Source: Phyllobates terribilis (taxonomy: Eukaryota). Taken from it: a DNA stretch of 64,000 nucleotides. A model generated the notes under the pieces. It searched no databases, had not been told where the DNA came from, and worked only from the letters and a program-made list of their open reading frames with translations. Location: NCBI RefSeq assembly GCF_046119375.1, contig NW_027362762.1, forward strand, positions 276,396,001 through 276,460,000, given 5' to 3'. Below, piece by piece: positions 2,899 through 60,550 of the stretch; positions within the stretch are counted from its first letter, which is position 1, and every line of letters starts with the position of its first letter. Both the position numbers and the translations under genes were made by a program.

Positions 2899-2989
2899 AT
2901 TTTTAAAAAACTATTTGAAATGAGAAAAGGGGGACGAATTAAACTTGAAGTAGATGCTGACCACATACAGGGTATTGGTGTACTCATGA

Positions 2990-3350
2990 GAAATTGGGTA
3001 ACAAACAATGTGGTCTATTATCCCTTTTGAAAATTAAGAACTTGGGGCTAAAACAATATTTTAGTGGAATAAATGTCATTTTTAATTTTTATAGCCCAAT
3101 GTTAAATAATCCCATCAATCATCTGTGGTTTTAAAATGCTTATTACACCTCTAGATAAATTCCTTTAGGGTTGCAGTTTCCAAATCGGTTCAAATCTGGC
3201 GGGTTTCTGCTGTTTTGGCATTTCAGAGGCTCTGATAATTTGACATGGCATCAGTAATTTATTCGAGCAAAAATCAAGTTCCAAAAGTCAAATTGCGCTC
3301 CTTCCCTTCCAAGCTCTGAAGAGTGACCAAACAGTAGTTGATGACAATAC
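2990..3350. repeat. Degenerate interspersed repeat that is the target of hAT copy 1; resumes at 14259-15044
   Basis: Motifs (CACCTCTAGATAAATTCC, GGGGCTAAAACAA, ACTCAGGAGAAATTG) are shared with 14259-15044 and 41500-43198. The sequence reads continuously across the hAT TSD. Confidence 0.6.
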
Positions 3351-4263
3351 TAGAGATGAGCGTTGTTCTACTCGAACTGTTCGCCAATCTCAAATTCGAG
3401 CTGTTTTGGGCGGTGTTCGAGCCGGTCGGCGAACACGAACAATTTGAGAAAAATTTGGCTGTTCGAGGTTATGTTCGATAACTGTTCGTGCACCAAAATC
3501 ATAACTGGATTTTTTCTCAGTAATGATGAAAATTAATGTTAATACGCAGTTTGAGTGTACAGCGGGGGGAGGGGCAGGGGATGGATCTCTGCAGGAACAA
3601 TGAAGATCTCCATTTTTTTTTCTCTTTCCCGCATTTGCAGTGGGGAGGTGCAATTTGTCAGCCTATCAGCAGCGCACACACGGAGCGAAGTGCTTTTTTT
3701 CACACAAGCAAGGGCATGTGTGATTGGCAGTGTATGTCACATGTCCTTGCCCTATAAGACCAAGCCATTTTCCCCGTCGCCACCATTTTCTCACTGCTGC
3801 AGCTGCGTGTTAGACGGCACCGCTGTTGCTGTGTGCGCTATACCTTGTTAATTTCAAGCCAATTTTCGCACAAATATACAGATAGCTTGGGAGTAGGGAA
3901 TAGTTGTGATTGCAGTCCTTTTAAGGACTAGGTTACAGCATTTCCTACGACTTTTATCAGGCAGGTCTGTGCTCTTAAATAGATAGATTGTGGGAGTAAA
4001 GACTAATTGTAATTGGAGTCCTTTTCAGGACTAGGTTACATCAGTTCCTATCAGTTTTTGCCAGGCAGGTCTGTGCCAGTGCTGTGCAAGTTTTTTTCAC
4101 AGCATTTGGCTGAATCTAGCAAAGCTAATCCTTTTTGGCCTATTGCAGAGTGTGTTAGTCAGTGGAGTAGCCTATCTGTGTTGCAAGATATACCACCTGT
4201 GTATAGAATACCAATTTTTTTACTGCACCTAGTGAAGTAAAATCTTTTGGGCATAGCATCATT

Positions 4264-5980
4264 CTATTAGTCCATCTATACTGACCTCCATCAGGTTGCA
4301 AACTGAATATAATTTTTTTCTGCATCTAGCTCTGAAAAAATATTTGGGCTTCTAGCGGTGTGTGGGACTTGGTCTATTAGTCCGTCTATACTGACCTCCA
4401 TCAGGTTGCAAATTAAAAATAATTTTTTTCTTCATTTATCTCTGAAAAAATATTTGGGCTTCTAGCAGCGTGTGGGACTTGTTCTATTAGTCCATCTATA
4501 CTGACCTCCATCAGGTTGCAAATTAAAAATAATTTTTTTCTTCATTTATCTCTGAAAAAATATTTGGGCTTCTAGCAGCGTGTGGGACTTGTTCTATTAG
4601 TCCATCTATACTGACCTCCATCAGGTTGCAAATTAAAAATAATTTTTTTCTGCATCTAGCTCTGAAAAAATATTTGGGCTTCTAGCAGTGTGTGGGACTT
4701 GGTCTATTAGTCCATCTATACTGACCTCCATCAGGTTGCAAATTAAAAATATTTTTTTTCTGCATCTAGCTCTGAAAAAATATTTTGGCTTCCAGCAGTG
4801 TGTGGGACTTGGTCTTTTAGTCCATCTATACTGACCTCCATCAGGTTGCAAATTGAATAAAAAAAAATTCTGCATCTAGCTCTGAAAAAATATTTGGGCT
4901 TCTAGTAGTGTGTGGGACTTGGTCTATTAGTCCATCTATACTGACCTCCATCAGGTTGCAAATTAAAAATAATTTTTTTCTTCATTTATCTCTGAAAAAA
5001 TATTTGGGCTTCTAGCAGCGTGTGGGACTTGTTCTATTAGTCCATCTATACTGACCTCCATCAGGTTGCAAATTAAAAATAATTTTTTTCTGCATCTAGC
5101 TCTGAAAAAATATTTGGGCTTCTAGCAGTGTGTGGGACTTGGTCTATTAGTCCATCTATACTGACCTCCATCAGGTTGCAAATTAAAAATAATTTTTTTC
5201 TGCATCTAGCTCTGAAAAAATATTTGGGCTTCTAGCAGTGTGTGGGACTTGGTCTATTAGTCCATCTATACTGACCTCCATCAGGTTGCAAATTAAAAAT
5301 AATTTTTTTCTTCATTTATCTCTGAAAAAATATTTGGGCTTCTAGCAGCGTGTGGGACTTGTTCTATTAGTCCATCTATACTGACCTCCATCAGGTTGCA
5401 AATTAAAAATAATTTTTTTCTGCATCTAGCTCTGAAAAAATATTTGGGCTTCTAGCAGTGTGTGGGACTTGGTCTATTAGTCCATCTATACTGACCTCCA
5501 TCAGGTTGCAAATTAAAAATAATTTTTTTCTGCATCTAGCTCTGAAAAAATATTTGGGCTTCTAGCGGTGTGTGGGACTTGGTCTATTAGTCCATCTATA
5601 CTGACCTCCATCAGGTTGCAAATTAAAAATAATTTTTTTCTGCATCTAGCTCTGAAAAAATATTTGGGCTTCTAGCAGTGTGTGGGACTTGGTCTATTAG
5701 TCCATCTATACTGACCTCCATCAGGCTGCAAATTAAAAATAATTTTTTTCTGCATCTAGCTCTGAAAAAATATTTGGGCTTCTAGCAGTGTGTGGGACTT
5801 GGTCTATTAGTCCATCTATACTGACCTCCATCAGGTTGCAAATTAAAAATAATTTTTTTCTTCATTTATCTCTGAAAAAATATTTGGGCTTCTAGCAGCG
5901 TGTGGGACTTGTTCTATTAGTCCATCTATACTGACCTCCATCAGGTTGCAAATTAAAAATAATTTTTTTCTGCATCTAGC
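4264..5980 (+). repeat. 110-bp tandem array (~15.6 units) inside hAT copy 1
   Basis: Unit TAGTCCATCTATACTGACCTCCATCAGGTTGCAAATTAAAAATAATTTTTTTCTGCATCTAGCTCTGAAAAAATATTTGGGCTTCTAGCAGTGTGTGGGACTTGGTCTAT repeats with period 110. Confidence 0.97.
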
Positions 5981-6094
5981 CCAGCCAATAGTTTTGGCCT
6001 AATACCACAGTTTGGCCACTCAGCTCTGCTCGGTTACCATCCATTGTTTTTTTGTGCAAACAACTCCAGAGTTGTGAATTAGTTAACCACCAAA

Positions 6095-9000
6095 ATGAGT
6101 GGAAAAAGGCCTGCTGCTGGTGGAAAGGGGAATAGGCGTGTTGGGAAGGGGAAAAAAGGTTGTGTCCGTGGGGTAGGTGCAGAAGAAAGACCATCTTCCA
6201 GCCAAACTAAAATGTCTACTTCTTTTAGCGGACAATGTGATAAGATCCCTTTCTTACGGCCACGCCAATCGCTACAAATTCCAGATGAGGCACAAAAACA
6301 GCAGGTGCTTCAACGGATATCAAGTGCTCCTTTACGTGGGCTCTCCTCCACATCAACTTCAACATCACAAATACTCCAGTCCTCAAAGGTGTCACCCAAA
6401 TCGCACTTGCTTCCTCACAGCTCCCAAATCTCCAGCTGCCCGTCTGAGTATGAGGTAGAACAGATGGTTGAGTCTGCAGAGCTGTTTACTCATACTATAG
6501 CCTGGGAATCAGAGGTCGACTCCAGCGCTTCTGTGAATCCAGACGAGGAAATCATCTGCACTGATGCCCAGAATCTTTATGAGTCGGATCCAGGACCAGA
6601 CGCAGAAGGTTCTGACCATAATGTAGACCCTCATTCCCAAACTGTAACTCCTGTTGGTGGAGACAATGAGGAAGACGATGATAAGACTCAAATACCTGAT
6701 TGGAGTGACAACTTTAGTTTTTTGTCAGGGCAGGAACAGGTTGGCTCTGAGGACGACGGGTGTGATAACGCACAGGGTGATGATGATGAGGTCGGAGATC
6801 CCACTTACTGTCAACCCACAGTCAGCCAAGAGATGAGGTCAGCAGAGGAGGTGGAGGAAGATGCTAGTGACGACGAGGTCAGGTTGCGCCTTCCTGGACA
6901 GAGACGTAGTACTGGAAGCACGTCAACAACTGCATCCTCAAACACAACTCTGCCTCTCACCACAAGTCGTGGTGGCTCTTCAGGTCGCATGGGTGCTAAG
7001 CCTTGCATAGCCTGGGCATTTTTTCAGATCGATAAAGATGACCCAACTCGTGTTATCTGTAACATTTGTCAGCAAAAGCTAAGTAGAGGCCAAAAAATAC
7101 ATAGTTTGAGTACTTCATGCATGAACCGGCACATGGACATGAAGCATAAGTTGCAGTGGGAAGCTCAGTGTGCTACAATGCGGCCTAGACGGCCGGGCCA
7201 ATCACCGTCTGCCATATCTTGTGCATCCGTGGCCTCTTCATCCTCTGTGACTGGGGGGACAGCAGTCACACCTGTTTTGGGGCGCAGACCTGCCATCTCT
7301 TTACCCGCAACAGCCAGCGTGATTGGCAGGTCATCATTTTCTTTGGAGGTGGTAACACCAGCTGGTGTTGAGCGCTGTCCGACATCGATAGCACCACCTT
7401 TGGATCAAGGCAACCTAACATGTCCGCCTGCATCTTCCTCACAGACCGGCAGTTTGCCGGGGACACCCTTATCAACCCCGTCTAAGCACAATAGCCAGCC
7501 CTCGGTCCCTCAGATGTGGACAAGTAAAAGACCATTTCCTCCTAGCCATGAGAAAGCTAAGAGGTTGAATTTCACCATCTGCAAGCTCTTGGCTACAGAA
7601 ATGCTGCCTTTCCGCCTGGTGGACACAGAGGATTTTCGAGACCTTATATCCGTCGCAGTGCCCCAGTACCAGATGCCCAGTCGGCACTACTTCTCAAAGA
7701 AAGGTGTGCCTGCGCTCCACCAGCATGTCGCACACAACATCACCGCTTCTTTGAGAAACTCTGTGTGTGACAGGGTGCATTTCACCACAGACACTTGGAC
7801 GAGTAGGCATGGACAGGGGCGTTACATGTCGCTGACTGGGCACTGGGTAACTATGGTGACAGCAGGACAAGGGGATGCTGTCCAAGTCTTGCCGTCCCCA
7901 CGAGTTGTGTGTCAATCCTCTTTATGTCAAAGTTCCTCCACTGCTTCTGCCTCCTCAACCTCCTCTCGGTCTTCCACCTGCACCCAAAGCCTGTCTGGTC
8001 ATGCCACAAGCTTTCTAACTGCGCAGAAGGGATCCTGCACACCTCCTTACTATGCTGGCAGTAGGGCTCAACGTCATCAGGCGGTTTTTACATTGAAATG
8101 TCTGGGAAATGTGAGTCACACAGCTGAGGAGTTGTGGTCAGCTCTGGAGAACCAATTTCATGAATGGTTGTCTTCACTGGACCTGAAACCAGGGAAGGCC
8201 GTGTGCGACAATGCTGCAAACCTGGGTGCGGCCCTTCGCCGGGGCAATGTCACACACGTGCCTTGTATGGCTCACGTGTTGAACCTGGTTGTCCAGCAAT
8301 TTTTAGCCCACTATCCCAGACTAGATGGCCTTCTGCAGAGGGCACGGTCGCTGTGTGCTCACTTCCGCCGTTCGCATCCCGCAGCTCAGCGACTTACATC
8401 TCTACAGAAGTCGTTGGGCCTGCCACTTCACCGGCTAAAATGCTATGTGCCTACCCGGTGGAATTCAACTCTGCACATGTTGCAGCGACTGTGGCAGCAC
8501 CGACAAGCCCTGGTGCAATACATTCTGACGTATAGCCTGGGCCAACGAGATTCAGAGGTGGGGCAAATCACGCTGGAGGAGTGGTCTCAGATCAGGAACC
8601 TATGCACCCTTCTGCACAGTTTTGAAATGGCGACGAAGATGTTTAGTGCTGACGATGCCATTATCAGCATGACTATTCCGGTGATTTACATGCTGGAGCA
8701 CATGTTAAACAGAATTCGGAGTCAGGTGGTGGCACAAGAGGAGGTGGAGGAAGTAGAGGAGGAGGAGTTGTATGCGGAAGGGCTAACATCTGCAAGGTCC
8801 AGACGGTCGGCAGCACCAAGGCGGCAGGCATGTGAGGGTGGGGGAGATGGTTTTACCAGGGCGCATGGTAGCAGCCAAACTAGTGAGGAAGGTGCAGGAG
8901 CCCAGGAAGAAGTGGAGGACGAACTGATGGAAGACTCATCAGATGAGGGAGACCTTGATCACATTTCTGTTGTGCGAGGTTGGGGGGAGAGGACAGAGGA

Positions 9001-9775
9001 AGGAAGCATGATTGTTACCTCGCCACCAACACAACAGGGACTTGGTGCTCCTGGATGCGCAACACACATGAGTGCCTTCTTGCTGCACTACCTGCAACAT
9101 GACCCTCGAATTGTGAGAATTAGAAATAATCCTGACTACTGGGTTGCCACACTGTTAGATCCCCGGTACAAAAGTAAATTTGCAGAAATTATTCCTGCCA
9201 TAGAAAGGGATGCACGCATGCAGGAGTATCAGCAGAGACTGTTGCAGAATCTTACATGTGCTTTTCCACAAAATACCAGTGGTGCACGTAGTGAATCTCA
9301 CAGTTCCAACTTGCCAACCGTGGGACCGTCAAGTGTTCAGCACTCAAACCGTAACAGAACCACAGTATCTGCTGGTAACATCAATTTTGCGGAATCATTT
9401 CACCACTTTTTTAGCCCATCCTTTGCAAGGCCACAGGAGACAAGAAGTCTGACACATAGTCAACGCCTAGAGACGATGGTACAGGAGTATCTCCAAGTAA
9501 ACATTGAAGCCACGACTGTGTCACTGGACCCTTGCTCTTTTTGGGCTTCCAATCTGGATAAATGGCCGGAGCTAGCCACTTACGCCTTGGAGATCTTGTC
9601 ATGCCCCGCAGCCAGCGTTCTGTCTGAACGTGTGTTCAGCGCTGCTGGTGGTGTGCTGACAGATAAGCGCACGCGGCTCTCCACTGATAATGTAGACAGA
9701 CTCACGTTCATAAAGATGAACAAATCATGGATCCGAAACGACTTTTCTACCCCTGTGTCATCCTGGGGAGAGTAA
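6095..9775 (+). CDS. hAT transposase, 1226 aa (BED finger, DDE core, C-terminal dimerization domain; ZBED-like)
   Basis: BED finger AWAFF..CNIC..RHMDMKH; FTTDTWTS (D566), VCDNAAN (D705), CMAH (CxxH), PTRWNST, SERVFS (E1178), then the TDKRTRLS dimerization motif. No stops. Confidence 0.95.
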   Translation: MSGKRPAAGGKGNRRVGKGKKGCVRGVGAEERPSSSQTKMSTSFSGQCDKIPFLRPRQSLQIPDEAQKQQVLQRISSAPLRGLSSTSTSTSQILQSSKVSPKSHLLPHSSQISSCPSEYEVEQMVESAELFTHTIAWESEVDSSASVNPDEEIICTDAQNLYESDPGPDAEGSDHNVDPHSQTVTPVGGDNEEDDDKTQIPDWSDNFSFLSGQEQVGSEDDGCDNAQGDDDEVGDPTYCQPTVSQEMRSAEEVEEDASDDEVRLRLPGQRRSTGSTSTTASSNTTLPLTTSRGGSSGRMGAKPCIAWAFFQIDKDDPTRVICNICQQKLSRGQKIHSLSTSCMNRHMDMKHKLQWEAQCATMRPRRPGQSPSAISCASVASSSSVTGGTAVTPVLGRRPAISLPATASVIGRSSFSLEVVTPAGVERCPTSIAPPLDQGNLTCPPASSSQTGSLPGTPLSTPSKHNSQPSVPQMWTSKRPFPPSHEKAKRLNFTICKLLATEMLPFRLVDTEDFRDLISVAVPQYQMPSRHYFSKKGVPALHQHVAHNITASLRNSVCDRVHFTTDTWTSRHGQGRYMSLTGHWVTMVTAGQGDAVQVLPSPRVVCQSSLCQSSSTASASSTSSRSSTCTQSLSGHATSFLTAQKGSCTPPYYAGSRAQRHQAVFTLKCLGNVSHTAEELWSALENQFHEWLSSLDLKPGKAVCDNAANLGAALRRGNVTHVPCMAHVLNLVVQQFLAHYPRLDGLLQRARSLCAHFRRSHPAAQRLTSLQKSLGLPLHRLKCYVPTRWNSTLHMLQRLWQHRQALVQYILTYSLGQRDSEVGQITLEEWSQIRNLCTLLHSFEMATKMFSADDAIISMTIPVIYMLEHMLNRIRSQVVAQEEVEEVEEEELYAEGLTSARSRRSAAPRRQACEGGGDGFTRAHGSSQTSEEGAGAQEEVEDELMEDSSDEGDLDHISVVRGWGERTEEGSMIVTSPPTQQGLGAPGCATHMSAFLLHYLQHDPRIVRIRNNPDYWVATLLDPRYKSKFAEIIPAIERDARMQEYQQRLLQNLTCAFPQNTSGARSESHSSNLPTVGPSSVQHSNRNRTTVSAGNINFAESFHHFFSPSFARPQETRSLTHSQRLETMVQEYLQVNIEATTVSLDPCSFWASNLDKWPELATYALEILSCPAASVLSERVFSAAGGVLTDKRTRLSTDNVDRLTFIKMNKSWIRNDFSTPVSSWGE

Positions 9776-9989
9776 AAGCTTGATGATTGGTTAAAATCAC
9801 CCTACCAACCGTTTTAAGCTTTCAAATTACTAATCATGTTTATCTGTATCTTGACTGGAAAATAATTTGGGCTTTGTAGCAGTGTGCAGCACTGATCCTA
9901 TTAGGCCATCTATAATAAGCTTCACCAGATTTAAAATTAAAAATAATTTTTAGCTGCATCTAGCCCGGAAAATAATTTTGGGGCTCCGA

Positions 9990-11545
9990 GATGCGCAAGA
10001 CACATAAGTGCCTTCTTGCTGCACTACCTGCAGCATGACCCTCATATTGTCAGAATTCGAAGTAATCATGACTACTGGGTTGCCACACTCTTAGATCCCC
10101 CAAACTTTTCGATCAACCTTTTCATTTTAATAAAGACCAAAAAAATGGTCATTTTTGAAATTATAAGCATTAGCAGGTTGTTAGAAACTGAAATCAAACA
10201 GTTTTCAACTCAAAACTTTATTCTAGGTGATGTTACATTTTCACATAGGACCCCTTGTTCGAAAGGAGCTTCTGAACTCTCTCGTCCATTGAATTTGTCA
10301 GGTTTTGGATGGTTTCTGCTTCAATTGTTTTGCATGAGGACAGAATACCCTCCCAGAGCTGTTGCTTAGATGTGAACTGCCTCCCGCCATCATAGACACT
10401 CCTTTTAATGATGCTCCAAAGGTTCTGAATGGGGTAGAGGTCAGGGGAGCATGGGGGTCACACCATAAGTTTGTCCCCTTTTATGCCCATATCAGCCAGA
10501 GATGCAGATGTTTTATGTGCAGCATGAGATGGTGCATTATCATGCAGAAAAATGATCTTGCTGTGAAATACACGGTTCTTCTTCTTGAACCATGGCAGGA
10601 AGTGCTGTTTGAGAAAATCCACATACATTATGGAGTTCATCTTTAGCGCCTTCAGGGATCCTAAAGGGGCCGACAATCTCTCTCCCCATGATTCCAGCCC
10701 AAAACATTACTCCACCTCCTCCTTGTTGGCGCTGTAGCCGTGTTTGCGTGGGGTGTCCATCAACCAGCCATCCTCCACTCCATTCATCTGGACCATCGAG
10801 CGCTGCACGGCACTCATCCGTGAACAAAACAGTTTTGAAATCAGTCTTCATGTAATGTTTGGCCCACTGGAGCCGTTTCTGCTTGTGTGAAGTGGATAGA
10901 GGAGGTCGACAGGATGGCATATGCACAGCTGCAAACCTCTGAAGGACCCTGCATCTTGTTGTTCTGGGGACGTTGGAGGCACAAGCAGCTTCAAAAACTT
11001 GTCTGCTGCTATGACAAGGCTTTTTTGCCGCTGCTGTTTCAACCTGACGTAATTGCCTGTAGGAAAGAGTCCTCAATTTGCCCTTATCAGCACGCACACG
11101 TGTGTACTGTGAATCAGCTACATACTTCTTGATTGCCAAGACACTTCATCCTGATCATCGCACAATGTTGATTGTAGTCATGCCTTGACCTAAACACTCC
11201 ACAATTTGTTGCTTCTCAGCAGCCGACACATCCTTTTTCTTTCCCATTTTGGCAGAAAATGTAGGCTGCTTAATAATGTGAGAGAGCCTTCTTAAGTAGT
11301 CTTGCCTTTCATTGGACACACCTGCCAAACTAATTAGCACAGGTGTCTGCAATTGCTTACAGTGATATAAAGAGCCCTGACACACATCACCATCAATGAG
11401 TTTAACTGACAAACAAACAAATTCTTCCCTTATCACTCCTAAACACTTTTTGCATAATAATTTGGAACGCGGTGTACATGTGCTTTTCCACAAAACACCA
11501 GTGGTTCACGTAGTGAATCTTAAAGTTCTAACTTGCCAACCGTGG
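9990..11545 (+). pseudogene. Second, older hAT transposase 3' remnant (9990-10100 and 11475-11545), interrupted by Tc1
   Basis: LHYLQHDPHIVRIRSNHDYWVATLLDP and TCAFPQNTSG pieces repeat the transposase C-terminal region. Diagnostic bases match the 33654-34833 relic better than the intact ORF. Confidence 0.8.
10101..11474 (-). mobile_element. Tc1 fragment carried in hAT copy 1
   Basis: One TIR (TTTGCATAATAATTTGGAACGCGGTG|TA) ends at 11474. Frameshifted transposase: MGKKKDVSAAEKQQIVE, VLFTDEC, VMFWAGI, FLHDNAPSH. The other TIR is deleted. Confidence 0.9.
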
Positions 11546-13373
11546 TCTGTATGGAATTGTTCAATAAAGGGCCCAAAATTAAGATAACATAGATGGGAGA
11601 GGTCTCTATGAATTGGAATTCCTAAGTATTTGATACCCTGTGAGGGCCAGGCAAAGGGAAAGTTGGACTGGATGGAATCCTATATGGATTTAGGGAGGGA
11701 GACATCGAGGGCCTCAGACTTCGCTGCATTGATTTTAAAATTTTACCATGTAACAAAGTGATCTATTTCAGCCATAACAGCAGGGATGGATATATGTGAT
11801 TGAGTGATATATACTAGGACATCATCAGCAAATAGAGAGCACTTGTACTCGGTGCCTCCCACCTCAATCCACCTAATATTGGGGTTATGGCGAATTGATG
11901 AGAGCAGGTGCTCCGTCACTAGGATGTATAAGAGAGGGGACAGAGGACATCCCTGCCTTGTCCCATTGGTGATTGTGAAAGGTGATGAAAATGTTCTGAC
12001 GCACCCCCTGGGCCTTGGGACACCCGGAGCCGGACCCTTTTTGGTGGATGCTGGTGGTTGTAGTCTTCGTGGCGGCGATCCGGTTCCGTGGCTCAGGGCG
12101 GTCAAACCAGTGGCGGAACTATTTATGTTGTTTTGATGTTTAAATGTCCGACTACGCCACCCGTGGATTGCGGTCAGAGTGAACCGCCGCTACAGGGCAG
12201 ACCGCTAAGGCTGGTGTTGTGGGTGCAGCAGAGCGTAGCATAACTCCCCACGGGAGGAGTATAGCCTCAGGGCAGTGTATGCGGAGGATGGGGGTGATGG
12301 TGCAGGGCAGCAGCAGTAACGACACGGAGTCAGTGATGCAGTTCAGGGCCTTTACTCACAGTTCTTATTATCCAGACCACGTCTGCAGGTAACGGCTGCC
12401 CACGTCGTACTGTGCTCACCAGGTGAGGGGCTCAGACAACTCCCAGATAACTTTGGAGCGCTTCACAGGACCCCCTTTGTGTGTCCTTTGTCTGGCCTTT
12501 CTTACCAACACTTCTGTCCGGCTGCCTCGGGCCTCCTCTTGGTAAACTTGGCGCCAGTTTCCCTGACCCTATGTGGTGCCTTCCTAGCGGGTGGAGCAAG
12601 GGGCTCCGCCACATAAAATGTCAGAGCCTCCGGTTTCTAGCTGAGGGTCATTTCCTGCCTCCACTAGTTCGGGGACCGGTCTCCCCCTTTGGCCTGACCC
12701 CTCCACGCAGGTGGATTCGGGCGTGCGGTGGCGACTCGCCCGTCCGCACCCCTGGGATCCCTTCATTCCTCGTTCCTGGAGCCTTCTCCGCTCCTCTTCC
12801 TTCCTTCTCCCTCTTGCAGGCCTGGGCCTCTGTTACTAGGCCCGCCTCCGGAGCAGAGCTCATGCAGAGCCCCTGCTCCCTGCCACTTCTGCTCAGACTT
12901 CTCTGCACTGAACTAAGATGGTGCCCACCTTTTATACTCCCTTCTCAATGCACCCAGGAACTGCTTCCTCCCTGCTCCTGCACTGCAGGGTTCCCCTTCC
13001 TCAGTGTTCCCTCCCCCCACTCCAGCCAGGGACAGGGACTGTCGTGCCCATCTCAGGGGCATATTGGTCGCCCTGCCCCACGGCAATGTGGTGTAATGCA
13101 TGCAGGTGTCGGGTCCTGATCCACACTCCATCCTTATCTGAGAGTGAGATATCACACCTCTGGGTGAGGTGCAATACGTCTGTAGCAACCGAGCCCTCGG
13201 TGCTACAGTTCCATTTATCTTCAGCCTAGGTGACGTATTGTGATACAGGGCCGTGATTTTGGCTATAAAAGGGTCCCCTAGACCCCTACCCCAAGCTTTT
13301 TAAGAGAATCATATATGGCGTGCCAGGAGACTCTATGGAATGCTTTCTCAGCATCCAACGAGAGTATCTACTT
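11546..13373 (-). mobile_element. L1/Tx1-type LINE reverse-transcriptase fragment, split by a solo LTR
   Basis: Minus-strand LSLDAEKAFHRVSW and ALYHNTSPRLKING (13208-13373) continue across the LTR into TFSSPFTITNGTRQGCPLSP, LFADD and IKYLGI (11546-11996). Confidence 0.9.
11997..13207 (-). mobile_element. Solo LTR (Gypsy-like, ~1.2 kb)
   Basis: TG...CA ends (TGTAGCACC / GGTGCGTCA on minus); 4-bp TSD GTTC at 11993-11996 and 13208-13211; TATAAAAG on minus at 12929-12936; AGTAAA poly(A)-like signal near 12355. Confidence 0.88.
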
Positions 13374-13478
13374 ACAAATTTTTAACTGCATCTAGCCCAG
13401 GAAATACTTTGTGCCTAGTAGCAGTGTCTGCTAGTCAGCGGATTATCCCGGCTGTTAAGCAAGCTACACCACCTGTAG

Positions 13479-13749
13479 TTTGGACACTTAATTTTTTCAA
13501 AGGAAATGCTTCGGGACCACGGGATACTTAGTGAAGAGCATCAGGAGGCACCCCAAGGCATAGGGGCTGGGACTGGCACTAGGATGCCTTGCGGTGGACA
13601 GCCGAGCTCGATCCTTATAAAAGCTTTTTAACTGCAGCAGCTTTAGTGGACGCTACTGGAGCTGGAATTACCGCGGCTGCTGGCATGAGACTTGCCCTCC
13701 AATAGATCCTTGTAAATGGATTTAAAGTGTATTCATTCAAATTAGAGGG
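13479..13749 (-). pseudogene. Degenerate 18S rRNA fragment (helix 18 / 530-loop region plus the start of V4)
   Basis: Minus strand reads ATTGGAGGGCAAGTCTCATGCCAGCAGCCGCGGTAATTCCAGCTCCAGTAGCG...GCTGCAGTTAAAAAGCT...GATGCTCTT...CCCGAAGCATTTCCTTTGAAAAAATTAAGTGT, recognisably eukaryotic 18S with many substitutions. Confidence 0.93.
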
Positions 13750-15046
13750 ACAATTTAAATTAAAAAGCTTAGAGCTGCCTCCACCACAGGGGGGCTCTCT
13801 CGACCCACCAGCGGACAGGCACCAGTATTGGGAGAGGGGGGCTGGCCGTCAGGGTTCACCGCGGCTCTGGCACAAACCCGGCGACACGGAGGTGGCACGG
13901 GCAGGAGCGGACTGGCCGTCTCGGCTTCTCACTTTTTGGATTTTAGAAGGGCATGACATGCCTATATCTGTGTCTCCCCCTCCTTTTACTCCTCCACCTC
14001 TTTTCTTTTCGCATGACTATATGTACTTGTCACTTTTCCATGTGTTAGTTGTGTCTTCTGAGCAGTTTGTCAGCTTTTGGACACCTTTGAAGGTGTTTTC
14101 TATGTGTTTCTATGTGTTTTTGTTTGCCTGCCATTGGTTTTAACGGTGTTCGAAGGTGTTCGACGAACAGTTCGACGAACAGTTCGGCGAACACACGGGT
14201 GTTCGACGAACCGAACCGAACTCGAACACTACGGGGGTGGCTCAACACTAGACAATACCATACAGGGTATCGGCATACTCAGCAGAAATTGCTCAACAAA
14301 TGTTAGGGTCCAGGTTCACCTCTTATCTTTGTGAAAATGAAAAATGTAGGGCTACAATAATATTTTCATTGAAAAAAAATTTTATATTTCATTTTTGTGG
14401 CCAAATATTACAAAGTTCTGTGAAACATCAGACGTTCAAGATAAGCATAGCACACCTAGATGAAATCCATGAAAGATGTAGCTTCCAAACTGGTGTCATT
14501 TTTTGTTTTATCTTTGCTGTTTTGGCACCTTAGGAGCTCAATAAATGTGATATGACATCTGCAATCTATTTCAGCCAAATCTGCACTTTAAAAATCAAAT
14601 AGTGCTTCTTCCATTCCAAGCACTGTCGTGTGCCCAAACAATGGATTCTGACCACATATTGGGTATCAGCATACTCAGGAGAAATTGTAAAACAAAGTAA
14701 ATTGTTCATTTTCTCCTATTACTTTTGAGTAAGTGATATATTTAGGCCTAAAACAACATTTACGTGGAAAAAAACAATCTTTCATTTTCAGGAACCAATG
14801 TTATTATTACTTAAATGGTTAACAAACTTTCTGAATGCAGTTTTGAATGTGATAAGGAGTGCAGATGTTATAACAGGCTATGTTTATGGATTTCCTGACA
14901 TTAAGGCACCTCAAAATCATTTAAAAAAATGAAGTGTTCCCTAAAAATATAGGTATTGTACATTGCTGCCAAAAATTGCTGCCAAACTTCTAACATTGCA
15001 GCAAAAAAAGTTATTTTAAGAATGATGCTGACGTAAATTAGACATA

Positions 15047-22076: not shown

Positions 22077-22868
22077 CACTATGTGCAGAATTATTAGGCA
22101 AGTTGTATTTTAGAGGATTATTTTTATTATTGATCAACAACTATGTTCTCAATCAACCCAAAAGACTCATAAATATCCAAGCTTAATATTTTTGGAAGTT
22201 GGAGTGGTTTTTTTTTTAGATTTGGCAATCTTAGGAGGATATCTGTTTGTGCAGGTAACTATTACTGTGCCGAATTATTAGGCAACTTAATAAAAACCAA
22301 ATATAATCCCATCTCACTTGTTTATTTTCACCAGGTAAACCAATATCAGTGCACAAAATTTAGAAATAAACATTTCTGACATGCAAAAACAAAACCCCCA
22401 AAAATTAGTGATCAATATAGCCACCTTTCTTTATGATGATACTCAACAGCCTTCCATCCATAGATTCTGTCAGTTGTTTGATCTGTTTTCGATCATCATT
22501 GCGTGCAGCAGCCACCACAGCCTCCCAGACACTGCTCTGAGAGGTGTACTGTTTTCCCTCCCTTTAGATCTCACATTTTATGATGGACCACAGGTTCTCT
22601 ATAGGGGTTCAGATCAGGTGAACAAGGGGGCCATGTCATTATTTTTTCTTCTTTTAGACCTTTTTTGGCCAGCCATGCTGTGGAGTAGTTGCATGTGATG
22701 GAGCATTGTCCTGCATGAAAATCATGTTTTTCTTGAACGATACCGACTTCTGCCTGTACCACTGCTTGAAGAAGTTGTCTTCCAGAAACTGGCAGTAGGT
22801 CTGAGAGTTGAGCTTCACTCCATCCTCAACCCGAAAAGATCCCACAAGTTCATCTTTGATGATACCAG
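22077..22868 (-). mobile_element. Tc1 3' fragment, cut by the left end of hAT copy 2
   Basis: TA|CACTATGTGCAGAATTATTAGGCAAG TIR; FMQDNAPSH and WPPCSPDLNP on minus. The 5' half is not found at the other end of copy 2. Confidence 0.87.
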
Positions 22869-23786
22869 TAGAGATGAGCGTTGTTCTACTCGAACTGTTC
22901 GCCAATCTCAAATTCGAGCTGTTTTGGGCGGTGTTCGAGCCGGTCGGCGAACACGAACAATTTGAGAAAAATTCGGCTGTTCGAGGTTATGTTCGATAAC
23001 TGTTCGTGCACCAAAATCATAACTGGATTTTTTCTCAGTAATGATGAAAATTAATGTTAATACGCAGTTTGAGTGTACAGCGGGGCGGGGGGAGGGGCAG
23101 GGGATGGATCTCTGCAGGAACAATGAAGATCTCCATTTTTTTTTCTCTTTCCCGCATTTGCAGTGGGGAGGTGCAATCTGTCAGCCTATCAGCAGCGCAC
23201 ACACGGAGCGAAGTGCTTTTTTTCACACAAGCAAGGGCATGAGTGATTGGCAGTGTATGTCACATGTCCTTGCCCTATAAGACCAAGCCATTTTCCCCGT
23301 CGCCACCATTTTCTCACTGCTGCAGCTGCGTGTTAGATGGCACCGCTGTTGCTGTGTGCGATATACCTTGTTAATTTCAAGCCAATTTTCGCACAAATAT
23401 ACAGATAGCTTGGGAGTAGGGAATAGTTGTGATTGCAGTCCTTTTAAGGACTAGGTTACAGCATTTCCTACGACTTTTATCAGGCAGGTCTGTGCTCTTA
23501 AATAGATAGATTGTGGGAGTAAAGACTAATTGTAATTGGAGTCCTTTTCAGGACAAGGTTACATCAGTTCCTATCAGTTTTTGCCAGGCAGGTCTGTGCC
23601 AGTGCTGTGCAAGTTTTTTTCACAGCATTTGGCTGAATCTAGCAAAGCTAATCCTTTTTGGCCTATTGCAGAGTGTGTTAGTCAGTGGAGTAGCCTATCT
23701 GTGTTGCAAGATATACCACCTGTGTATAGAATACCAATTTTTTTACTGCACCTAGTGAAGTAAAATCTTTTGGGCATAGCATCATT

Positions 23787-25283
23787 CTATTAGTCCATCT
23801 ATACTGACCTCCATCAGGTTGCAAACTGAATATAATTTTTTTCTGCATCTAGCTCTGAAAAAATATTTGGGCTTCTAGCGGTGTGTGGGACTTGGTCTAT
23901 TAGTCCATCTATACTGACCTCCATCAGGTTGCAAATTAAAAATAATTTTTTTCTGCATCTAGCTCTGAAAAAATATTTGGGCTTCTAGCAGTGTGTGGGA
24001 CTTGGTCTAATAGTCCATCTATACTGACCTCCATCAGGTTGCAAATTAAAAATAATTTTTTTCTTCATTTATCTCTGAAAAAATATTTGGGCTTCTAGCA
24101 GCGTGTGGGACTTGTTCTATTAGTCCATCTATACTGACCTCCATCAGGTTGCAAATTAAAAATAATTTTTTTCTGCATCTAGCTCTGAAAAAATATTTGG
24201 GCTTCTAGCAGTGTGTGGGACTTGGTCTATTAGTCCATCTATACTGACCTCCATCAGGTTGCAAATTAAAAATAATTTTTTTCTGCATCTAGCTCTGAAA
24301 AAATATTTGGGCTTCTAGCAGTGTGTGGGACTTGGTCTATTAGTCCATCTATACTGACCTCCATCAGGTTGCAAATTGAATAAAAAAAATTTCTGCATCT
24401 AGCTCTGAAAAAATATTTGGGCTTCTAGCGGTGTGTGGGACTTGGTCTATTAGTCCATCTATACTGACCTCCATCAGGTTGCAAATTAAAAATAATTTTT
24501 TTCTGCATCTAGCTCTGAAAAAATATTTGGGCTTCTAGCAGTGTGTGGGACTTGGTCTATTAGTCCATCTATACTGACCTCCATCAGGTTGCAAATTAAA
24601 AATAATTTTTTTCTTCATTTAGCTCTGAAAAAATATTTGGGTTTCTAGCAGTGTGTGGGACTTGTTCTATTAGTCCTTCTATACTGACGTCCAACAGGTT
24701 GCAAATTGAATATAATTTTTTTCTGCATCTAGCTCTGAAAAAATATTTGGGCTTGTAGCGGTGTGTGGGACTTGGTCTATTAGTCCATCTATACTGACCT
24801 CCATCAGGTTGCAAATTAAAAATAATTTTTTTCTGCATCTAGCTCTGAAAAAATATTTGGGCTTCTAGCAGTGTGTGGGACTTGGTCTATTAGTCCATCT
24901 ATACTGACCTCCATCAGGTTGCAAATTAAAAATAATTTTTTTCTGCATCTAGCTCTGAAAAAATATTTGGGCTTCTAGCAGTGTGTGGGACTTGGTCTAT
25001 TAGTCCATCTATACTGACCTCCATCAGGTTGCAAATTAAAAATAATTTTTTTCTGCATCTAGCTCTGAAAAAATATTTGGGCTTCTAGCAGTGTGTGGGA
25101 CTTGGTCTATTAGTCCATCTATACTGACCTCCATCAGGTTGCAAATTGAATAAAAAAATTTTCTGCATCTAGCTCTGAAAAAATATTTGGGCTTCTAGCG
25201 GTGTGTGGGACTTGGTCTATTAGTCCATCTATACTGACCTCCATCAGGTTGCAAATTAAAAATAATTTTTTTCTGCATCTAAC
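23787..25283 (+). repeat. 110-bp tandem array (~13.6 units) inside hAT copy 2
   Basis: Same unit as 4264-5980, about two units shorter. Confidence 0.96.
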
Positions 25284-25397
25284 CCAGCCAATAGTTTTGG
25301 CCTAATACCACAGTTTGGCCACTCAGCTCTGCTCGGTTACCATCCATTGTTTTTTTGTGCAAACAACTCCAGAGTTGTGAATTAGTTAACCACCAAA

Positions 25398-28300
25398 ATG
25401 AGTGGAAAAAGGCCTGCTGCTGGTGGAAAGGGGAATAGGCGTGTTGGGAAGGGGAAAAAAGGTTGTGTCCGTGGGGTAGGTGCAGAAGAAAGACCATCTT
25501 CCAGCCAAACTAAAATGTCTACTTCTTTTAGCGGACAATGTGATAAGATCCCTTTCTTACGGCCACGCCAATCGCTACAAATTCCAGATGAGGCACAAAA
25601 ACAGCAGGTGCTTCAACGGATATCAAGTGCTCCTTTAAGTGGGCTCTCCTCCACATCAACTTCAACATCACAAATACTCCAGTCCTCAAAGGTGTCACCC
25701 AAATCGCACTTGCTTCCTCACAGCTCCCAAATCTCCAGCTGCCCGTCTGAGTATGAGGTAGAACAGATGGTTGAGTCTGCAGAGCTGTTTACTCATACTA
25801 TAGCCTGGGAATCAGAGGTCGACTCCAGCGCTTCTGTGAATCCAGACGAGGAAATGATCTGCACTGATGCCCAGAATCTTTATGAGTCAGATCCAGGACC
25901 AGACGCAGAAGGTTCTGACCATAATGTAGACCCTCATTCCCAAACTGTAACTCCTGTTGGTGGAGACAATGAGGAAGACGATGATAAGACTCAAATACCT
26001 GATTGGAGCGACAACTTTAGTTTTTTGTCAGGGCAGGAACAGGTTGGCTCTGAGGACGACGGGTGTGATAACGCACAGGGTGATGATGATGAGGTCGGAG
26101 ATCCCACTTACTGTCAACCCACAGTCAGCCAAGAGATGAGGTCAGCAGAGGAGGTGGAGGAAGATGCTAGTGACGACGAGGTCAGGTTGCGCCTTCCTGG
26201 ACAGAGACGTAGTACTGGAAGCACGTCAACAACTGCATCCTCAAACACAACTCTGCCTCTCACCACAAGTCGTGGTGGCTCTTCAGGTCGCATGGGTGCT
26301 AAGCCTTGCATAGCCTGGGCATTTTTTCAGATCGATAAAGATGACCCAACTCGTGTTATCTGTAACATTTGTCAGCAAAAGCTAAGTAGAGGCCAAAAAA
26401 TACATAGTTTGAGTACTTCATGCATGAACCGGCACATGGACATGAAGCATAAGTTGCAGTGGGAAGCTCAGTGTGCTACAATGCGGTCTAGCCGGCCGGG
26501 CCAACCACCGTCTGCCATATCTTGTGCATCCGCGGCCTCTTCATCCTCTGTGACTGGGGGGACAGCAGTCACACCTGTTTTGGGGCGCAGACCTGCCACC
26601 TCTTTACCCGCAACAGCCAGCGTGATTGGCAGGTCATCATTTTCTTTGGAGGTGGTAACACCAGCTGGTGTTGAGCGCTGTCCGACATCGATAGCACCAC
26701 CTTTGGATCAAGGCAACCTAACATGTCCGCCTGCATCTTCCTCACAGACCGGCAGTTTGCCGGGGACACCCTTATCAACCCCGTCTAAGCACAATAGCCA
26801 GCCCTCGGTCCCTCAGATGTGGACAAGTAAAAGACCATTTCCTCCTAGCCATGAGAAAGCTAAGAGGTTGAATTTCACCATCTGCAAGCTCTTGGCTACA
26901 GAAATGCTGCCTTTCCGCCTGGTGGACACAGAGGATTTTCGAGACCTTATGTCCGTCGCAGTGCCCCAGTACCAGATGCCCAGTCGGCACTACTTCTCAA
27001 AGAAGGGTGTGCCTGCGCTCCACCAGCATGTCGCACACAACATCACCGCTTCTTTGAGAAACTCTGTGTGTGACAGGGTGCATTTCACCACAGACACTTG
27101 GACGAGTAGGCATGGACAGGGGCGTTACATGTCGCTGACTGGGCACTGGGTAACTATGGTGACAGCAGGACAAGGGGCTGCTGTCCAAGTCTTGCAGTCC
27201 CCACGAGTTGTGCGTCAATCCTCTTTATGTCATTTTTCCTCCACTGCTTCTGCCTCCTCAACCTCCTCTCGGTCTTCCACCTGCACCCAAAGCCTGTCTG
27301 GTCATGCCACAAGCTTTCTAACTGCGCAGAAGGGATCCTGCACACCTCCTTACTATGCTGGCAGTAGGGCTCAACGTCATCAGGCGGTTTTTACATTGAA
27401 ATGTCTGGGAAATGTGAGTCACACAGCTGAGGAGTTGTGGTCAGCTCTGGAGAACCAATTTCATGAATGGTTGTCTCCACTGGACCTGAAACCAGGGAAG
27501 GCCGTGTGCGACAATGCTGCAAACCTGGGTGCGGCCCTTCGCCGGGGCAATGTCACACACGTGCCTTGTATGGCTCACGTGTTGAACCTGGTTGTCCAGC
27601 AATTTTTAGCCCACTATCCCAGACTAGATGGCCTTCTGCAGAGGGCACGGTCGCTGTGTGCTCACTTCCGCCGTTCGCATCCCGCAGCTCAGCGACTTAC
27701 ATCTCTACAGAAGTCGTTGGGCCTGCCACTTCACCGGCTAAAATGCGATGTGCCTACCCGGTGGAATTCAACTCTGCACATGTTGCAGCGACTGTGGCAG
27801 CACCGACAAGCCCTGGTGCAATACGTTCTGACGTATAGCCTGGGCCAACGAGATTCAGAGGTGGGGCAAATCACGCTGGAGGAGTGGTCTCAGATCAGGG
27901 ACCTATGCACCCTTCTGCACAGTTTTGAAATGGCGACGAAGATGTTTAGTGCTGACGATGCCATTATCAGCATGACTATTCCGGTGATTTACATGCTGGA
28001 GCACATGTTAAACAGAATTCGGAATCAGGTGGTGGCACAAGAGGAGGTGGAGGAAGTAGAGGAGGAGGAGTTGTATGCGGAAGGGCTAACATCTGCAAGG
28101 TCCAGAAGGTCGGCAGCACCAAGGCTGCAGGCATGTGAGGGTGGGGGAGATGGTTTTACCAGGGCGCATGGTAGCAGCCAAACTAGTGAGGAAGGTGCAG
28201 GAGCCGAGGAAGAAGTCTAGGACGAACTGATGGAAGACTCATCAGATGAGGGAGACCTTGATCACATTTCTGTTGTGCGAGGTTGGGGGGAGAGGACAGA

Positions 28301-29078
28301 GGAAGGAAGCATGATTGTTACCTCGCCACCAACACAACAGGGACTTGGTGCTCCTGGATGCGCAACACACATGAGTGCCTTCTTGCTGCACTACCTGCAA
28401 CATGACCCTCGAATTGTGAGAATTAGAAATAATCCTGACTACTGGGTTGCCACACTGTTAGATCCCCGGTACAAAAGTAAATTTGCAGAAATTATTCCTG
28501 CCATAGAAAGGGATGCACGCATGCAGGAGTATCAGCAGAGACTGTTGCAGAATCTTACATGTGCTTTTCCACAAAATACCAGTGGTGCACGTAGTGAATC
28601 TCACAGTTCCAACTTGCCAACCGTGGGACCGTCAAGTGTTCAGCACTCAAACCGTAACAGAACCACAGTATCTGCTGGTAACATCAATTTTGCGGAATCA
28701 TTTCACCACTTTTTTAGCCCATCCTTTGCAAGGCCACAGGAGACAAGAAGTCTGACACATAGTCAACGCCTAGAGACGATGGTACAGGAGTATCTCCAAG
28801 TAAACATTGAAGCCACGACTGTGTCACTGGACCCTTGCTCTTTTTGGGCTTCCAATCTGGATAAATGGCCGGAGCTAGCCACTTACGCCTTGGAGATCTT
28901 GTCATGCCCCGCAGCCAGCGTTCTGTCTGAACGTGTGTTCAGCGCTGCTGGTGGTGTGCTGACAGATAAGCGCACGCGGCTCTCCACTGATAATGTAGAC
29001 AGACTCACGTTCATAAAGATGAACAAATCATGGATCCGAAACGACTTTTCTACCCCTGTGTCATCCTGGGGAGAGTAA
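25398..29078 (+). pseudogene. hAT transposase with a single nonsense codon (TAG at 28218-28220)
   Basis: The 940-aa and 282-aa ORFs are in the same frame. GTG GAG in copy 1 reads GTC TAG here, upstream of the catalytic E and the dimerization domain. Confidence 0.93.
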
Positions 29079-29403
29079 AAGCTTGATGATTGGTTAAAAT
29101 CACCCTACCAACCGTTTTAAGCTTTCAAATTACTAATCATGTTTATCTGTATCTTGACTGGAAAATAATTTGGGCTTTGTAGCAGTGTGCAGCACTGATC
29201 CTATTAGGCTATCTATAATAAGCTTCACCAGATTTAAAATTAAAAATAATTTTTAGCTGCATCTAGCCCGGAAAATAATTTTGGGGCTCCGAGATGCGCA
29301 AGACACATAAGTGCCTTCTTGCTGCACTACCTGCAGCATGACCCTCATATTGTCAGAATTCGAAGTAATCATGACTACTGGGTTGCCACACTCTTAGATC
29401 CCC

Positions 29404-30777
29404 CAAACTTTTCGATCAACCTTTTCATTTTAATAAAGACCAAAAAAATGGTCATTTTTGAAATTATAAGCATTAGCAGGTTGTTAGAAACTGAAATCAA
29501 ACAGTTTTCAACTCAAAACTTTATTCTAGGTGATGTTACATTTTCACATAGGACCCCTTGTTCGAAAGGAGCTTCTGAACTCTCTCGTCCATTGAATTTG
29601 TCAGGTTTTGGATGGTTTCTGCTTCAATTGTTTTGCATGAGGACAGAATACCCTCCCAGAGCTGTTGCTTAGATGTGAACTGCCTCCCGCCATCATAGAC
29701 ACTCCTTTTAATGATGCTCCAAAGGTTCTGAATGGGGTAGAGGTCAGGGGAGCATGGGGGTCACACCATAAGTTTGTCCCCTTTTATGCCCATATCAGCC
29801 AGAGATGCAGATGTTTTATGTGCAGCATGAGATGGTGCATTATCATGCAGAAAAATGATCTTGCTGTGAAATACACGGTTCTTCTTCTTGAACCATGGCA
29901 GGAAGTGCTGTTTGAGAAAATCCACATACATTATGGAGTTCATCTTTAGCGCCTTCAGGGATCCTAAAGGGGCCGACAATCTCTCTCCCCATGATTCCAG
30001 CCCAAAACATTACTCCACCTCCTCCTTGTTGGCGCTGTAGCCGTGTTTGCGTGGGGTGTCCATCAACCAGCCATCCTCCACTCCATTCATCTGGACCATC
30101 GAGCGCTGCATGGCACTCATCCGTGAACAAAACAGTTTTGAAATCAGTCTTCATGTAATGTTTGGCCCACTGGAGCCGTTTCTGCTTGTGTGAAGTGGAT
30201 AGAGGAGGTCGACAGGATGGCGTATGCACAGCTGCAAACCTCTGAAGGACCCTGCATCTTGTTGTTCGGGGGACGTTGGAGGCACAAGCAGCTTCAAAAA
30301 CTTGTCTGCTGCTATGACAAGGCTTTTTTGACGCTGCTCTTTCAACCTGACGTAATTGCCTGTAGGAAAGAGTCCTCAATTTGCCCTTATCAGCACGCAC
30401 ACGTGTGTACTGTGAATCAGCTACATACTTCTTGATTGCCAAGACACTTCATCCTGATCATCGCACAATGTTGATTGTAGTCATGCCTTGACCTAAACAC
30501 TCCACAATTTGTTGCTTCTCAGCAGCCGACACATCCTTTTTCTTTCCCATTTTGGCAGAAAATGTAGGCTGCTTAATAATGTGAGAGAGCCTTCTTAAGT
30601 AGTCTTGCCTTTCATTGGACACACCTGCCAAACTAATTAGCACAGGTGTCTGCAATTGCTTACAGTGATATAAAGAGCCCTGACACACATCACCATCAAT
30701 GAGTTTAACTGACAAACAAACAAATTCTTCCCTTATCACTCCTAAACACTTTTTGCATAATAATTTGGAACGCGGTG
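29404..30777 (-). mobile_element. Tc1 cargo fragment in copy 2
   Basis: Same breakpoints and sequence as 10101-11474. Confidence 0.9.
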
Positions 30778-30848
30778 TACATGTGCTTTTCCACAAAACA
30801 CAAGTGGTTCACGTAGTGAATCTTACAGTTCTAACTTGCCAACCGTGG

Positions 30849-32678: not shown

Positions 32679-32783
32679 ACAAATTTTTAACTGCATCTAG
32701 CCCAGGAAATACTTTGTGCCTAGTAGCAGTGTCTGCTAGTCAGCAGATTATCCCGGCTGTTAAGCAAGCTACACCACCTGTAG

Positions 32784-33053
32784 TTTAGACACTTAATTTT
32801 TTCAAAGGAAATGCTTCGGGACCATGGGATACTTAGTGAAGAGCATCAGGAGGCACCCCAAGGCATAGGGGCTGGGACTGGCAGTAGGATGCCTTGCGGT
32901 GGACAGCCGAGCTCGATCCTTATAAAAGCTTTTTAACTGCAGCAGCTTTAGTGGACGCTACTGGAGCTGGAATTACCGCGGCTGCTGGCATGAGACTTGC
33001 CCTCCAATAGATCCTTGTAAATGGATTTCAAGTGTATTCATTCAAATTAGAGA
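32784..33053 (-). pseudogene. 18S rRNA fragment in copy 2
   Basis: Near-identical to 13479-13749. Confidence 0.92.
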
Positions 33054-33555: not shown

Positions 33556-33653
33556 GTCCCGAGCCATACGCCTTCCTTACCTGAGGGTGAGATACCACAC
33601 CTCTGGGTGAGATGCAGTAAATCTGTGGCGACTGAACCCTCAGGGGCGCCACA
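33556..33653 (-). mobile_element. 5' end of a related LTR, truncated by the right end of hAT copy 2
   Basis: Minus strand starts TGTGGCGCCCCTGAGGGTTCAGTCGCCACAG, similar to the LTR start at 13207. It is inserted in a hAT transposase relic. Confidence 0.75.
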
Positions 33654-43198: not shown

Positions 43199-43200
43199 TA

Positions 43201-60540: not shown

Positions 60541-60550
60541 TCGCCAGCAT

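Follow-up and report, generated by a model that had tools for sequence, protein, structure and literature searches.

How does a DNA transposon come to carry, besides its own transposase gene, a satellite array and the remains of several other kinds of repeats, and how do copies of this whole ensemble come to lie at different places within one stretch of a genome? The question is raised by 64,000 nucleotides of DNA from the poison frog Phyllobates terribilis (NCBI RefSeq assembly GCF_046119375.1, contig NW_027362762.1, positions 276,396,001 to 276,460,000 of the forward strand; hereafter the window, meaning the whole stretch analysed). The original prediction for this DNA had proposed that positions 3351-14250 of the window hold a composite hAT transposon with an intact transposase gene and passengers of several classes, assembled once and then moved as a unit. 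We put at about 85% the probability that the interval 3351-14250 represents a single copy of a young hAT DNA transposon of Ac type in a dendrobatoid (poison-frog-type) genome; this is a joint figure for the whole best explanation, which includes the origin, set out below, of the sequences that lie behind the gene.

The element, its gene and its copies

The element at 3351-14250 (forward strand), hereafter copy 1, is 10,900 bp long. Its bounds were read from its ends and recovered by end searches, and those first proposed are exact, in that both the ends and the break in similarity between copies fall at these very bases. The 5' end (3351-3362, forward strand) reads TAGAGATGAGCG and the 3' end (14239-14250) reads GGCTCAACACTA; 9 of the 12 bases are complementary, giving imperfect TIRs (terminal inverted repeats) of 12 bp, and each end begins with the hAT-type YARNG (TAGAG at the 5' end, TAGTG at the 3' end when read as its reverse complement). 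A search of the window for these termini found three 5' ends (TAGAGATGAGCG...) and three 3' ends (...GGCTCAACACTA). Copy 1 has on both sides a perfect 8-bp target-site duplication (TSD), GACAATAC, at 3343-3350 and 14251-14258. Its flanks are adjacent units of a diverged tandem repeat of about 385 bp, and in three other units of this repeat the matches to the left and the right flank overlap by about 7 bp, showing that the target is present there only once. These units thus provide three paralogous empty sites, and the claim that the element is bounded by TIRs and a TSD holds for copy 1. The tandem repeat itself (about 68-74% identity between units) is found on both sides of copy 1 and beside the 5' end of a further copy described below (copy 4), at 2953-3343, 14259-14800 and 41500-43200, and was not reported by Tandem Repeats Finder (TRF).

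Both ends of the element are also rich in the motif GTTCG/CGAAC: there are 8 in the first 200 bp (the 5' subterminal region, 3351-3550, forward strand) and 11 in the final 200 bp of the 3' terminal region (13797-14250, forward strand), against no more than one per 200 bp elsewhere in the window. The 3' terminal region contains, in addition, a 12-bp tandem repeat at 14158-14193. The presence of motif clusters at both ends indicates that the two termini belong to one recognition system. Neither motif counts in 200-bp bins nor TIR searches revealed a terminus buried inside the element. A macrotransposon, or composite of two elements, was considered and rejected: each copy has one 5' and one 3' terminus, and there is no inner motif cluster. 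Comparison of the five flanking 8-mers with the Ac-clade consensus nTnnnnAn showed an A at position 7 in all five and a T at position 2 in two, the number of sites being small. All five readable flanking 8-mers begin with G in addition to having the A at position 7, which may be due to chance or reflect a wider target preference.

The transposase gene (6095-9775, forward strand) is an uninterrupted open reading frame (ORF) of 1226 codons that encodes a BED finger, a DDE core with the W and CxxH features, and a hAT C-terminal dimerisation domain. In Pfam searches, zf-BED (PF02892, 4e-10) and Dimer_Tnp_hAT (PF05699, 2e-14) both scored above the cut-off. The only relative of solved structure detected by sequence is the Hermes transposase (4e-19), and in the alignment of the two the second catalytic D, the CxxH, the W and the catalytic E of the frog ORF stand opposite their Hermes counterparts; the first catalytic D lies in an FTTDTWTS motif. 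An alignment with 18 anuran relatives showed the D, D, E, W, C and H residues to be conserved in 16-18 of them. The AlphaFold (AF2) model of residues 471-1226 has a mean predicted local distance difference test (pLDDT) score of 70.8 and matches Hermes chains with template modelling (TM) scores of 0.66-0.70, nothing else being convincing. In addition, the frog protein is extended at its N-terminus by 300 disordered residues and contains long inserts of low complexity. The transposase of copy 1, which had been called intact, therefore looks intact as judged from its stop-free ORF, its domains, its catalytic residues and its Hermes-like predicted fold. The features that define hAT elements are found together here, namely an 8-bp TSD (in copy 1), YARNG-type TIRs with subterminal repeats, a BED/DDE/hATC transposase and its catalytic residues.

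Full-length relatives of the transposase are anuran "ZBED4/6-like" proteins with at most about 46-50% identity, and the sole close matches (72-89%) are fragments within gene models of the dendrobatoid frogs Ranitomeya, Phyllobates and Anomaloglossus. Because the full-length relatives are this distant and the close matches are only fragments, we infer that the element probably represents a hAT family of its own, separate from the known anuran relatives. Exact-protein look-ups retrieved no record identical to the transposase or to two ORFs that span junctions of the composite.

Copy 1 is not alone in the window. Copy 2 (22869-33555, forward strand; 10,687 bp) has the same junctions and two fewer satellite units, and its transposase gene (25398-29078, forward strand) contains one premature stop and no frameshift or indel. 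Copy 3 (62605-64000, reverse strand) has a different flank, and only its last 1.4 kb are visible before the window ends. The original prediction had counted these three; a fourth, partial copy is also present at 37452-41432 (reverse strand), consisting of a 5' end, the first 0.9 kb of which is 96% identical to copy 1, and a satellite array of 27.8 units, with neither gene nor tail. The array of copy 4 stops against unrelated DNA that contains a tyrosine-recombinase-like (DIRS-type) ORF (36243-36758, reverse strand).

Copies 1 and 2 are collinear over 8.3 kb with 99.2% identity and one 2-bp indel (98.7-99.2% in the self-comparison of the window), and each segment of their tails is 97-100% identical. 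Over the shared 1.4 kb, copy 1 is 99.3-99.5% identical to copy 3, and copy 2 is 98.4-98.6% identical to either. In a test with 30-base windows and 2 mismatches allowed, all ten cargo junctions recur in copy 2, the one junction failing the test differing only by the 2-bp indel. All four junctions visible in copy 3 recur as well, i.e. those between the right end of the long terminal repeat (LTR) and the L1 fragment, the L1 fragment and the satellite-like unit, the satellite-like unit and the 18S piece, and the 18S piece and the 3' terminal region. Similarity between the copies stops exactly at the inverted ends, and the flanking DNA is unrelated. The identical breakpoints and the different insertion sites that had been proposed are thus both confirmed. 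Since all visible junctions are common to the three copies, the nest was assembled once, before the copies separated. One-time assembly of the composite followed by its transposition as a unit is supported by these shared junctions, by the 98.4-99.5% identity, by the unrelated flanks and by the TSD of copy 1. The transposase genes of copies 1 and 2 differ by 20 non-synonymous and 5 synonymous codons plus the one stop; these differences look neutral, as would be expected for neutral decay.

The composite contains a 110-bp satellite array upstream of the gene (4263-5980, forward strand), as had been claimed. It comprises 15.6 units in copy 1, against 13.6 in copy 2 and 27.8 in copy 4.

Composition and origin of the tail

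The 4.4 kb that follow the gene, referred to here as the tail, consist, in this order, of satellite units, a relic hAT gene with a Tc1-like element inside, an L1 reverse transcriptase (RT) fragment with an LTR inside, a satellite-like unit, an 18S rRNA piece and the 3' terminal region. About 1.5 diverged 110-bp satellite units (9817-9985, forward strand) directly follow the stop codon, and one further diverged satellite-like unit (13367-13476, forward strand) is 73-75% identical to 9822-9927 and 4105-4200. A 3.4-kb insertion into one satellite unit, of which the two tail pieces would be the halves, was rejected because the phases do not meet: either 69 bp would be missing or 41 bp duplicated.

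The tail contains pieces of hAT itself, which the original list of passengers lacked. A Tc1-like insertion and an 88-bp deletion, one of each, disrupt this relic of a second hAT transposase gene (9978-11545, forward strand), whose reference frame contains one stop. Its two pieces, of 123 and 71 bp, are 89% and 93% identical to nucleotides 9042-9164 and 9253-9323 of the ORF. Identity of the relic is somewhat higher with an older hAT fragment next to copy 2 (94%) than with the gene of the element itself (89-93%), the pieces compared being short. At the join between satellite and relic, about 13 bp resemble both partners, a case of microhomology.

Nested in this relic is a Tc1-like element of 1.37 kb (10104-11474, reverse strand) with a degenerate transposase frame that has at least two interruptions; its DDE_3 and HTH_Tnp_Tc3_2 matches in Pfam are below the curated cut-offs. 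Its right-end terminal repeat is kept and adjoins a TA, and the other terminal repeat is missing. The 88 bp of relic are missing on the side of the lost Tc1 end, so that one deletion took both this end and part of the relic. The passenger had been described as a Tc1 fragment; a Tc1-like piece is indeed present at about this place, but it is not a mere fragment, as only one terminal repeat has been lost. A homology search with a junction-spanning ORF led to the Logan contig L001 (run SRR14867391), which was considered as another copy of the composite and rejected: it contains only a free Tc1-like element (100-1490) with both terminal repeats, 92% identical to window positions 10113-11476.

The next segment is an internal fragment of an L1-type RT gene (11546-13370, reverse strand) with one nested insertion and several frame interruptions. 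It matches Pfam RVT_1 (1.7e-10) and, in the PDB, LINE-1 ORF2p better than R2 (1.4e-13 versus 0.008). Neither an end of a long interspersed nuclear element (LINE) nor an A-tail nor a duplication of its own was found for this fragment, which adjoins the relic hAT piece on one side and the satellite-like unit on the other. Within it lies a unit of 1211 bp (11997-13207, no strand assigned) of the form TG...CA, which reads TGACGCACC...GGTGCTACA, has short inverted termini and has the 4-bp duplication GTTC on both sides. This unit splits one RT reading frame, and RT-like translation resumes on either side of it, the pieces having been compared apart. Together, these properties fit a solo LTR, so that both parts of the claim of an L1 RT fragment with a nested solo LTR agree with what is found here. 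The only related LTR sequence in the window is a 90-bp piece at 33556-33645.

The 18S rRNA piece that had been reported was likewise recovered, as an internal, decayed fragment on the reverse strand (13480-13796, core 13650-13770; Rfam RF01960, 70.8 and 90.1 bits). The 18S (13371-13796, reverse strand) and L1 RT (11546-13370, reverse strand) segments lie on the same strand, separated by one satellite-like unit, the 18S being upstream; a chimeric 18S/L1 retrocopy of old date is conceivable. The Pfam search of the tail yielded no further domains, other L1 domains included, and no other pieces of RNA genes and no tRNAs were found in it.

These observations can be assembled into a mechanism. By the known working of hAT elements, recognition by the transposase would be confined to the short inverted ends and the GTTCG/CGAAC motifs of the outermost 200 bp; the enzyme would excise and reinsert the element, generating the 8-bp duplication, and whatever DNA lies between the ends would travel passively. 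The tail would have been built once, in a master copy, and probably by two routes. Along the one, a microhomology-mediated switch, in which either the template was changed while a gap was repaired or two copies recombined ectopically, would have led from the satellite-like unit behind the gene into the 3' portion of a different hAT copy with about 10% divergence. The resemblance of about 13 bp at the join to both partners points to such a switch between two hAT copies. Along the other, nested insertions would have followed: a Tc1-like element may have entered the relic at a TA and later been trimmed by a deletion, and an LTR retroelement may have entered the L1 fragment and later been reduced to a solo LTR. 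Both the LTR and the Tc1-like element bear insertion marks of their own, which argues for nested insertions, and neither the relic gene nor the L1 fragment nor the 18S piece shows an end of its own, which argues for filler or remnants of deletions. Being dispensable, the tail would not have been purged, and the whole element would then have been amplified. Relic pieces, second satellite-like unit and 3' terminus stand in the order and orientation of the 3' half of a hAT element, and we favour the view that the tail represents what is left of the 3' half of a different, decayed copy that came to be joined to the rear of an intact gene.

Copy 2, clustering and rival explanations

The 8-mers that flank copy 2, GATACCAG and GTCCCGAG, are not a duplication of each other, and the TSD as support for transposition is thus perfect in copy 1 but wanting in copy 2. 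The left flank of copy 2 is Tc1-like DNA; a Tc1-like transposase remnant (22414-22866, reverse strand) of a family other than that in the tail adjoins its 5' end. On the right, the 90-bp piece already mentioned (33556-33645), which is 81-83% identical to the end of the LTR in the tail, is followed by the older hAT gene fragment (33654-34877, 1.2 kb). The latter is 92.5% identical to the 3' part of the ORF and has two stops and three in-frame indels, and the 0.6 kb that come next contain scrambled satellite-like bits. It was considered as a preserved ancestral form of the tail and set aside, being scrambled and without a terminus. The flanks of copy 2 are not contiguous in any recognisable repeat. 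Exchange between copies in the window does not explain the missing TSD either, as comparison of the five flanking 8-mers in both orientations gave no match. As the flanks are both mismatched and non-contiguous, we infer that a rearrangement took place next to copy 2 after its insertion. It is known that linked hAT copies cause rearrangements in their flanks (PMC1592236, PMC4270019, PMC9910405). The 7-mer TTGATGA precedes both copy 1 (3338-3344) and copy 2 (22856-22862) at one and the same distance, 13 to 7 bp upstream, which again may be due to chance or to a wider target preference.

If young hAT sequence amounts to about 255 Mb in a poison-frog genome of 6.8 Gb (PMC6278860), and if all of it belonged to this family, a stretch of 64 kb would be expected to contain fewer than 0.3 further copies; the window contains four copies. 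This density above expectation suggests movement to linked sites, that is, short-range transposition. That the element is autonomous would be indirectly supported by the intact ORF of copy 1, the near-identical copies and the fresh TSD. We tentatively go one step further and suggest, as a possibility that we hold to be rather doubtful as a whole, that this is a family of autonomous vertebrate hAT elements that is active now or was so very recently, that moves mostly by linked hops, and in whose master copy about 6 kb of dispensable DNA have become fixed. The dispensable DNA would comprise the satellite array, which changes length in place, the nest of dead repeats and the rRNA fragment.

It should be noted that several points weigh against our explanation or parts of it. 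An intact ORF does not prove activity, and a TSD is present in only one of the two complete copies. Local hopping was argued from density and not measured, and the choice of the window may inflate that density. For the proposed origin of the tail, the basis consists of relic pieces that are short (123 and 71 bp) and of one microhomology. Finally, all genomic evidence comes from one 64-kb window, which matters for copy number, polymorphism and the order in which the pieces were acquired.

The tail may also be accounted for in other ways. The element could have recruited a foreign end: a normal-sized autonomous hAT would have lost or bypassed its own 3' end and paired its 5' end with the 3' end of an older, decayed copy downstream, so that the TE-rich genomic DNA between the two (TE, transposable element) became internal. 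The hAT-like order and orientation of relic pieces, satellite-like unit and 3' terminus speak for this explanation, as do the greater closeness of the relic to a second hAT lineage of the window than to the gene of the element itself and the absence of ends proper to the L1 and 18S pieces. However, neither a motif cluster nor a TIR remains after the gene as a trace of the first 3' terminus, the window contains no independent copy of the ancestral short element, and the 13-bp microhomology inside the satellite-like unit suits a template switch or recombination at least equally well. We regard end recruitment as possible, though unlikely. Much less can be said for an active capture of host sequence in the manner of Pack elements, with the pieces, notably the 18S, as selected and functional cargo. 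A piece derived from a host gene, the 18S, is in all three copies, and the cargo is fixed. Nevertheless, the element is not non-autonomous, as it has a full transposase gene; no host protein-coding fragment is present, all protein-domain matches in the tail being those of TEs (DDE_3, HTH_Tnp_Tc3_2 and RVT_1); the 18S piece is internal and decayed; the cargo has diverged between copies just as the rest of the element has; and the Tc1 and LTR pieces show insertion marks of their own. Such capture is already largely refuted and we hold it to be highly improbable.

The remaining explanation questions transposition itself, in that the copies would be duplicated blocks of a segmental duplication or mis-assembled repeats. 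The crowding of four copies into 64 kb, the lack of a TSD at copy 2 and the TTGATGA shared upstream of copies 1 and 2 would all agree with it. Against this, the resemblance of all copies breaks off precisely at the inverted ends, beyond which the flanks are unrelated, copy 1 shows both a perfect 8-bp TSD and paralogous empty sites, and the copies differ by 0.5-1.6% and in the number of satellite units, so that they are not collapsed or duplicated reads. We consider it the least probable of the explanations weighed here, and retain the reading of a transposon that acquired the decayed 3' half of another copy and was then amplified as a unit.

Several other features of the window lie outside the element. 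An LTR retroelement remnant (57588-62185) has 410-bp direct repeats at 57588-57997 and 61777-62185 that are 89.8% identical and enclose integrase-domain ORFs (58486-59641, reverse strand); copy 3 begins 420 bp beyond it. Further Tc1-like transposase remnants, of families other than that in the tail, are located at 616-1824 and 43910-44689 (both forward strand). Tandem arrays at 47600-47963 and 51587-52444, with periods of 151 bp and 132/394 bp, respectively, are unrelated to the hAT satellite. A GC-rich region (47938-50219) contains overlapping long ORFs on both strands, of up to 427 codons, without a Pfam match.

Wider meaning and comparison with known systems

If the tentative view of a recently active, locally hopping family is true, the element would serve as a natural carrier by which satellite arrays and fragments of repeats are scattered over a giant amphibian genome. 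The locus offers a clean and datable case in which the master copy of a DNA transposon gathers foreign repeats and then spreads them, and it bears on how repeat-rich amphibian genomes grow. The intact-looking gene and the copies of about 99% identity point to recent DNA-transposon activity, which is uncommon in a vertebrate. For repeat annotation, composites of this kind give rise to chimeric libraries and to inflated numbers of Tc1, LINE, LTR and rRNA "copies".

Ac/Ds elements of maize tend to move to linked sites. The frog element resembles them in its 8-bp TSD, its short imperfect TIRs, its subterminal motifs and its DDE transposase with a hAT C-terminal domain. As in the frog, some members of the Ac/Ds family contain foreign filler DNA (PMC3260210), and linked copies rearrange their flanks (PMC1592236, PMC4270019). 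For maize, hAT derivatives with filler DNA have been documented, and such filler has been called rare for the superfamily (PMC3260210). The filler-bearing elements of maize, however, have no transposase, whereas the filler of the frog element sits behind an intact-looking gene. Ac itself is 4.6 kb long (PMC3260210); the frog element is more than twice that size, includes a satellite array and resides in an amphibian host.

Plant Pack-type elements (PMC8903248), with which the original prediction had compared the cargo, are likewise TIR-bounded DNA transposons that move foreign DNA internally. They are non-autonomous and carry fragments of host genes, whereas the frog element has its own gene and a cargo of dead repeats and one rRNA fragment. 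The comparison does not fit the cargo, which is made up of nested insertions and terminus-less fragments in a non-coding tail, plus a relic of the element's own kind of gene, and contains no host protein-coding genes.

Bulk repeat analyses have shown young hAT sequence to be abundant in poison-frog genomes and have suggested recent activity (PMC6278860). Among the anuran hATs annotated as 'zinc finger BED domain-containing protein 4/6-like' (from Ranitomeya, Dendrobates, Phyllobates, Anomaloglossus, Hyperolius, Rana, Xenopus and others), the domain order is the same and the catalytic part aligns over its full length; these were compared as proteins only, and it is the limit of about 46-50% identity for full-length relatives that sets the frog element apart. 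The house fly hAT Hermes (2bw3, 4d1q, 8sjd) shares the fold and the aligned catalytic residues, at a sequence identity of about 15%, and differs in lacking the frog protein's disordered N-terminal extension and low-complexity inserts.

Tol2 of medaka is a young autonomous vertebrate hAT with near-identical copies and an intact gene, and it tolerates long inserts. It is about 4.7 kb long, has introns and has no nest of foreign repeats. Given that Tol2 tolerates long inserts, the passive carriage of 4-6 kb would be mechanistically unremarkable. Repeat annotators, moreover, are acquainted with nested-repeat composites that are amplified as a unit. The element had been presented as unusual, which holds in part: its 10.9-kb size and the joint presence of a fixed 4.4-kb nest and an intact-looking gene are less common, but in other respects it follows ordinary transposon biology.

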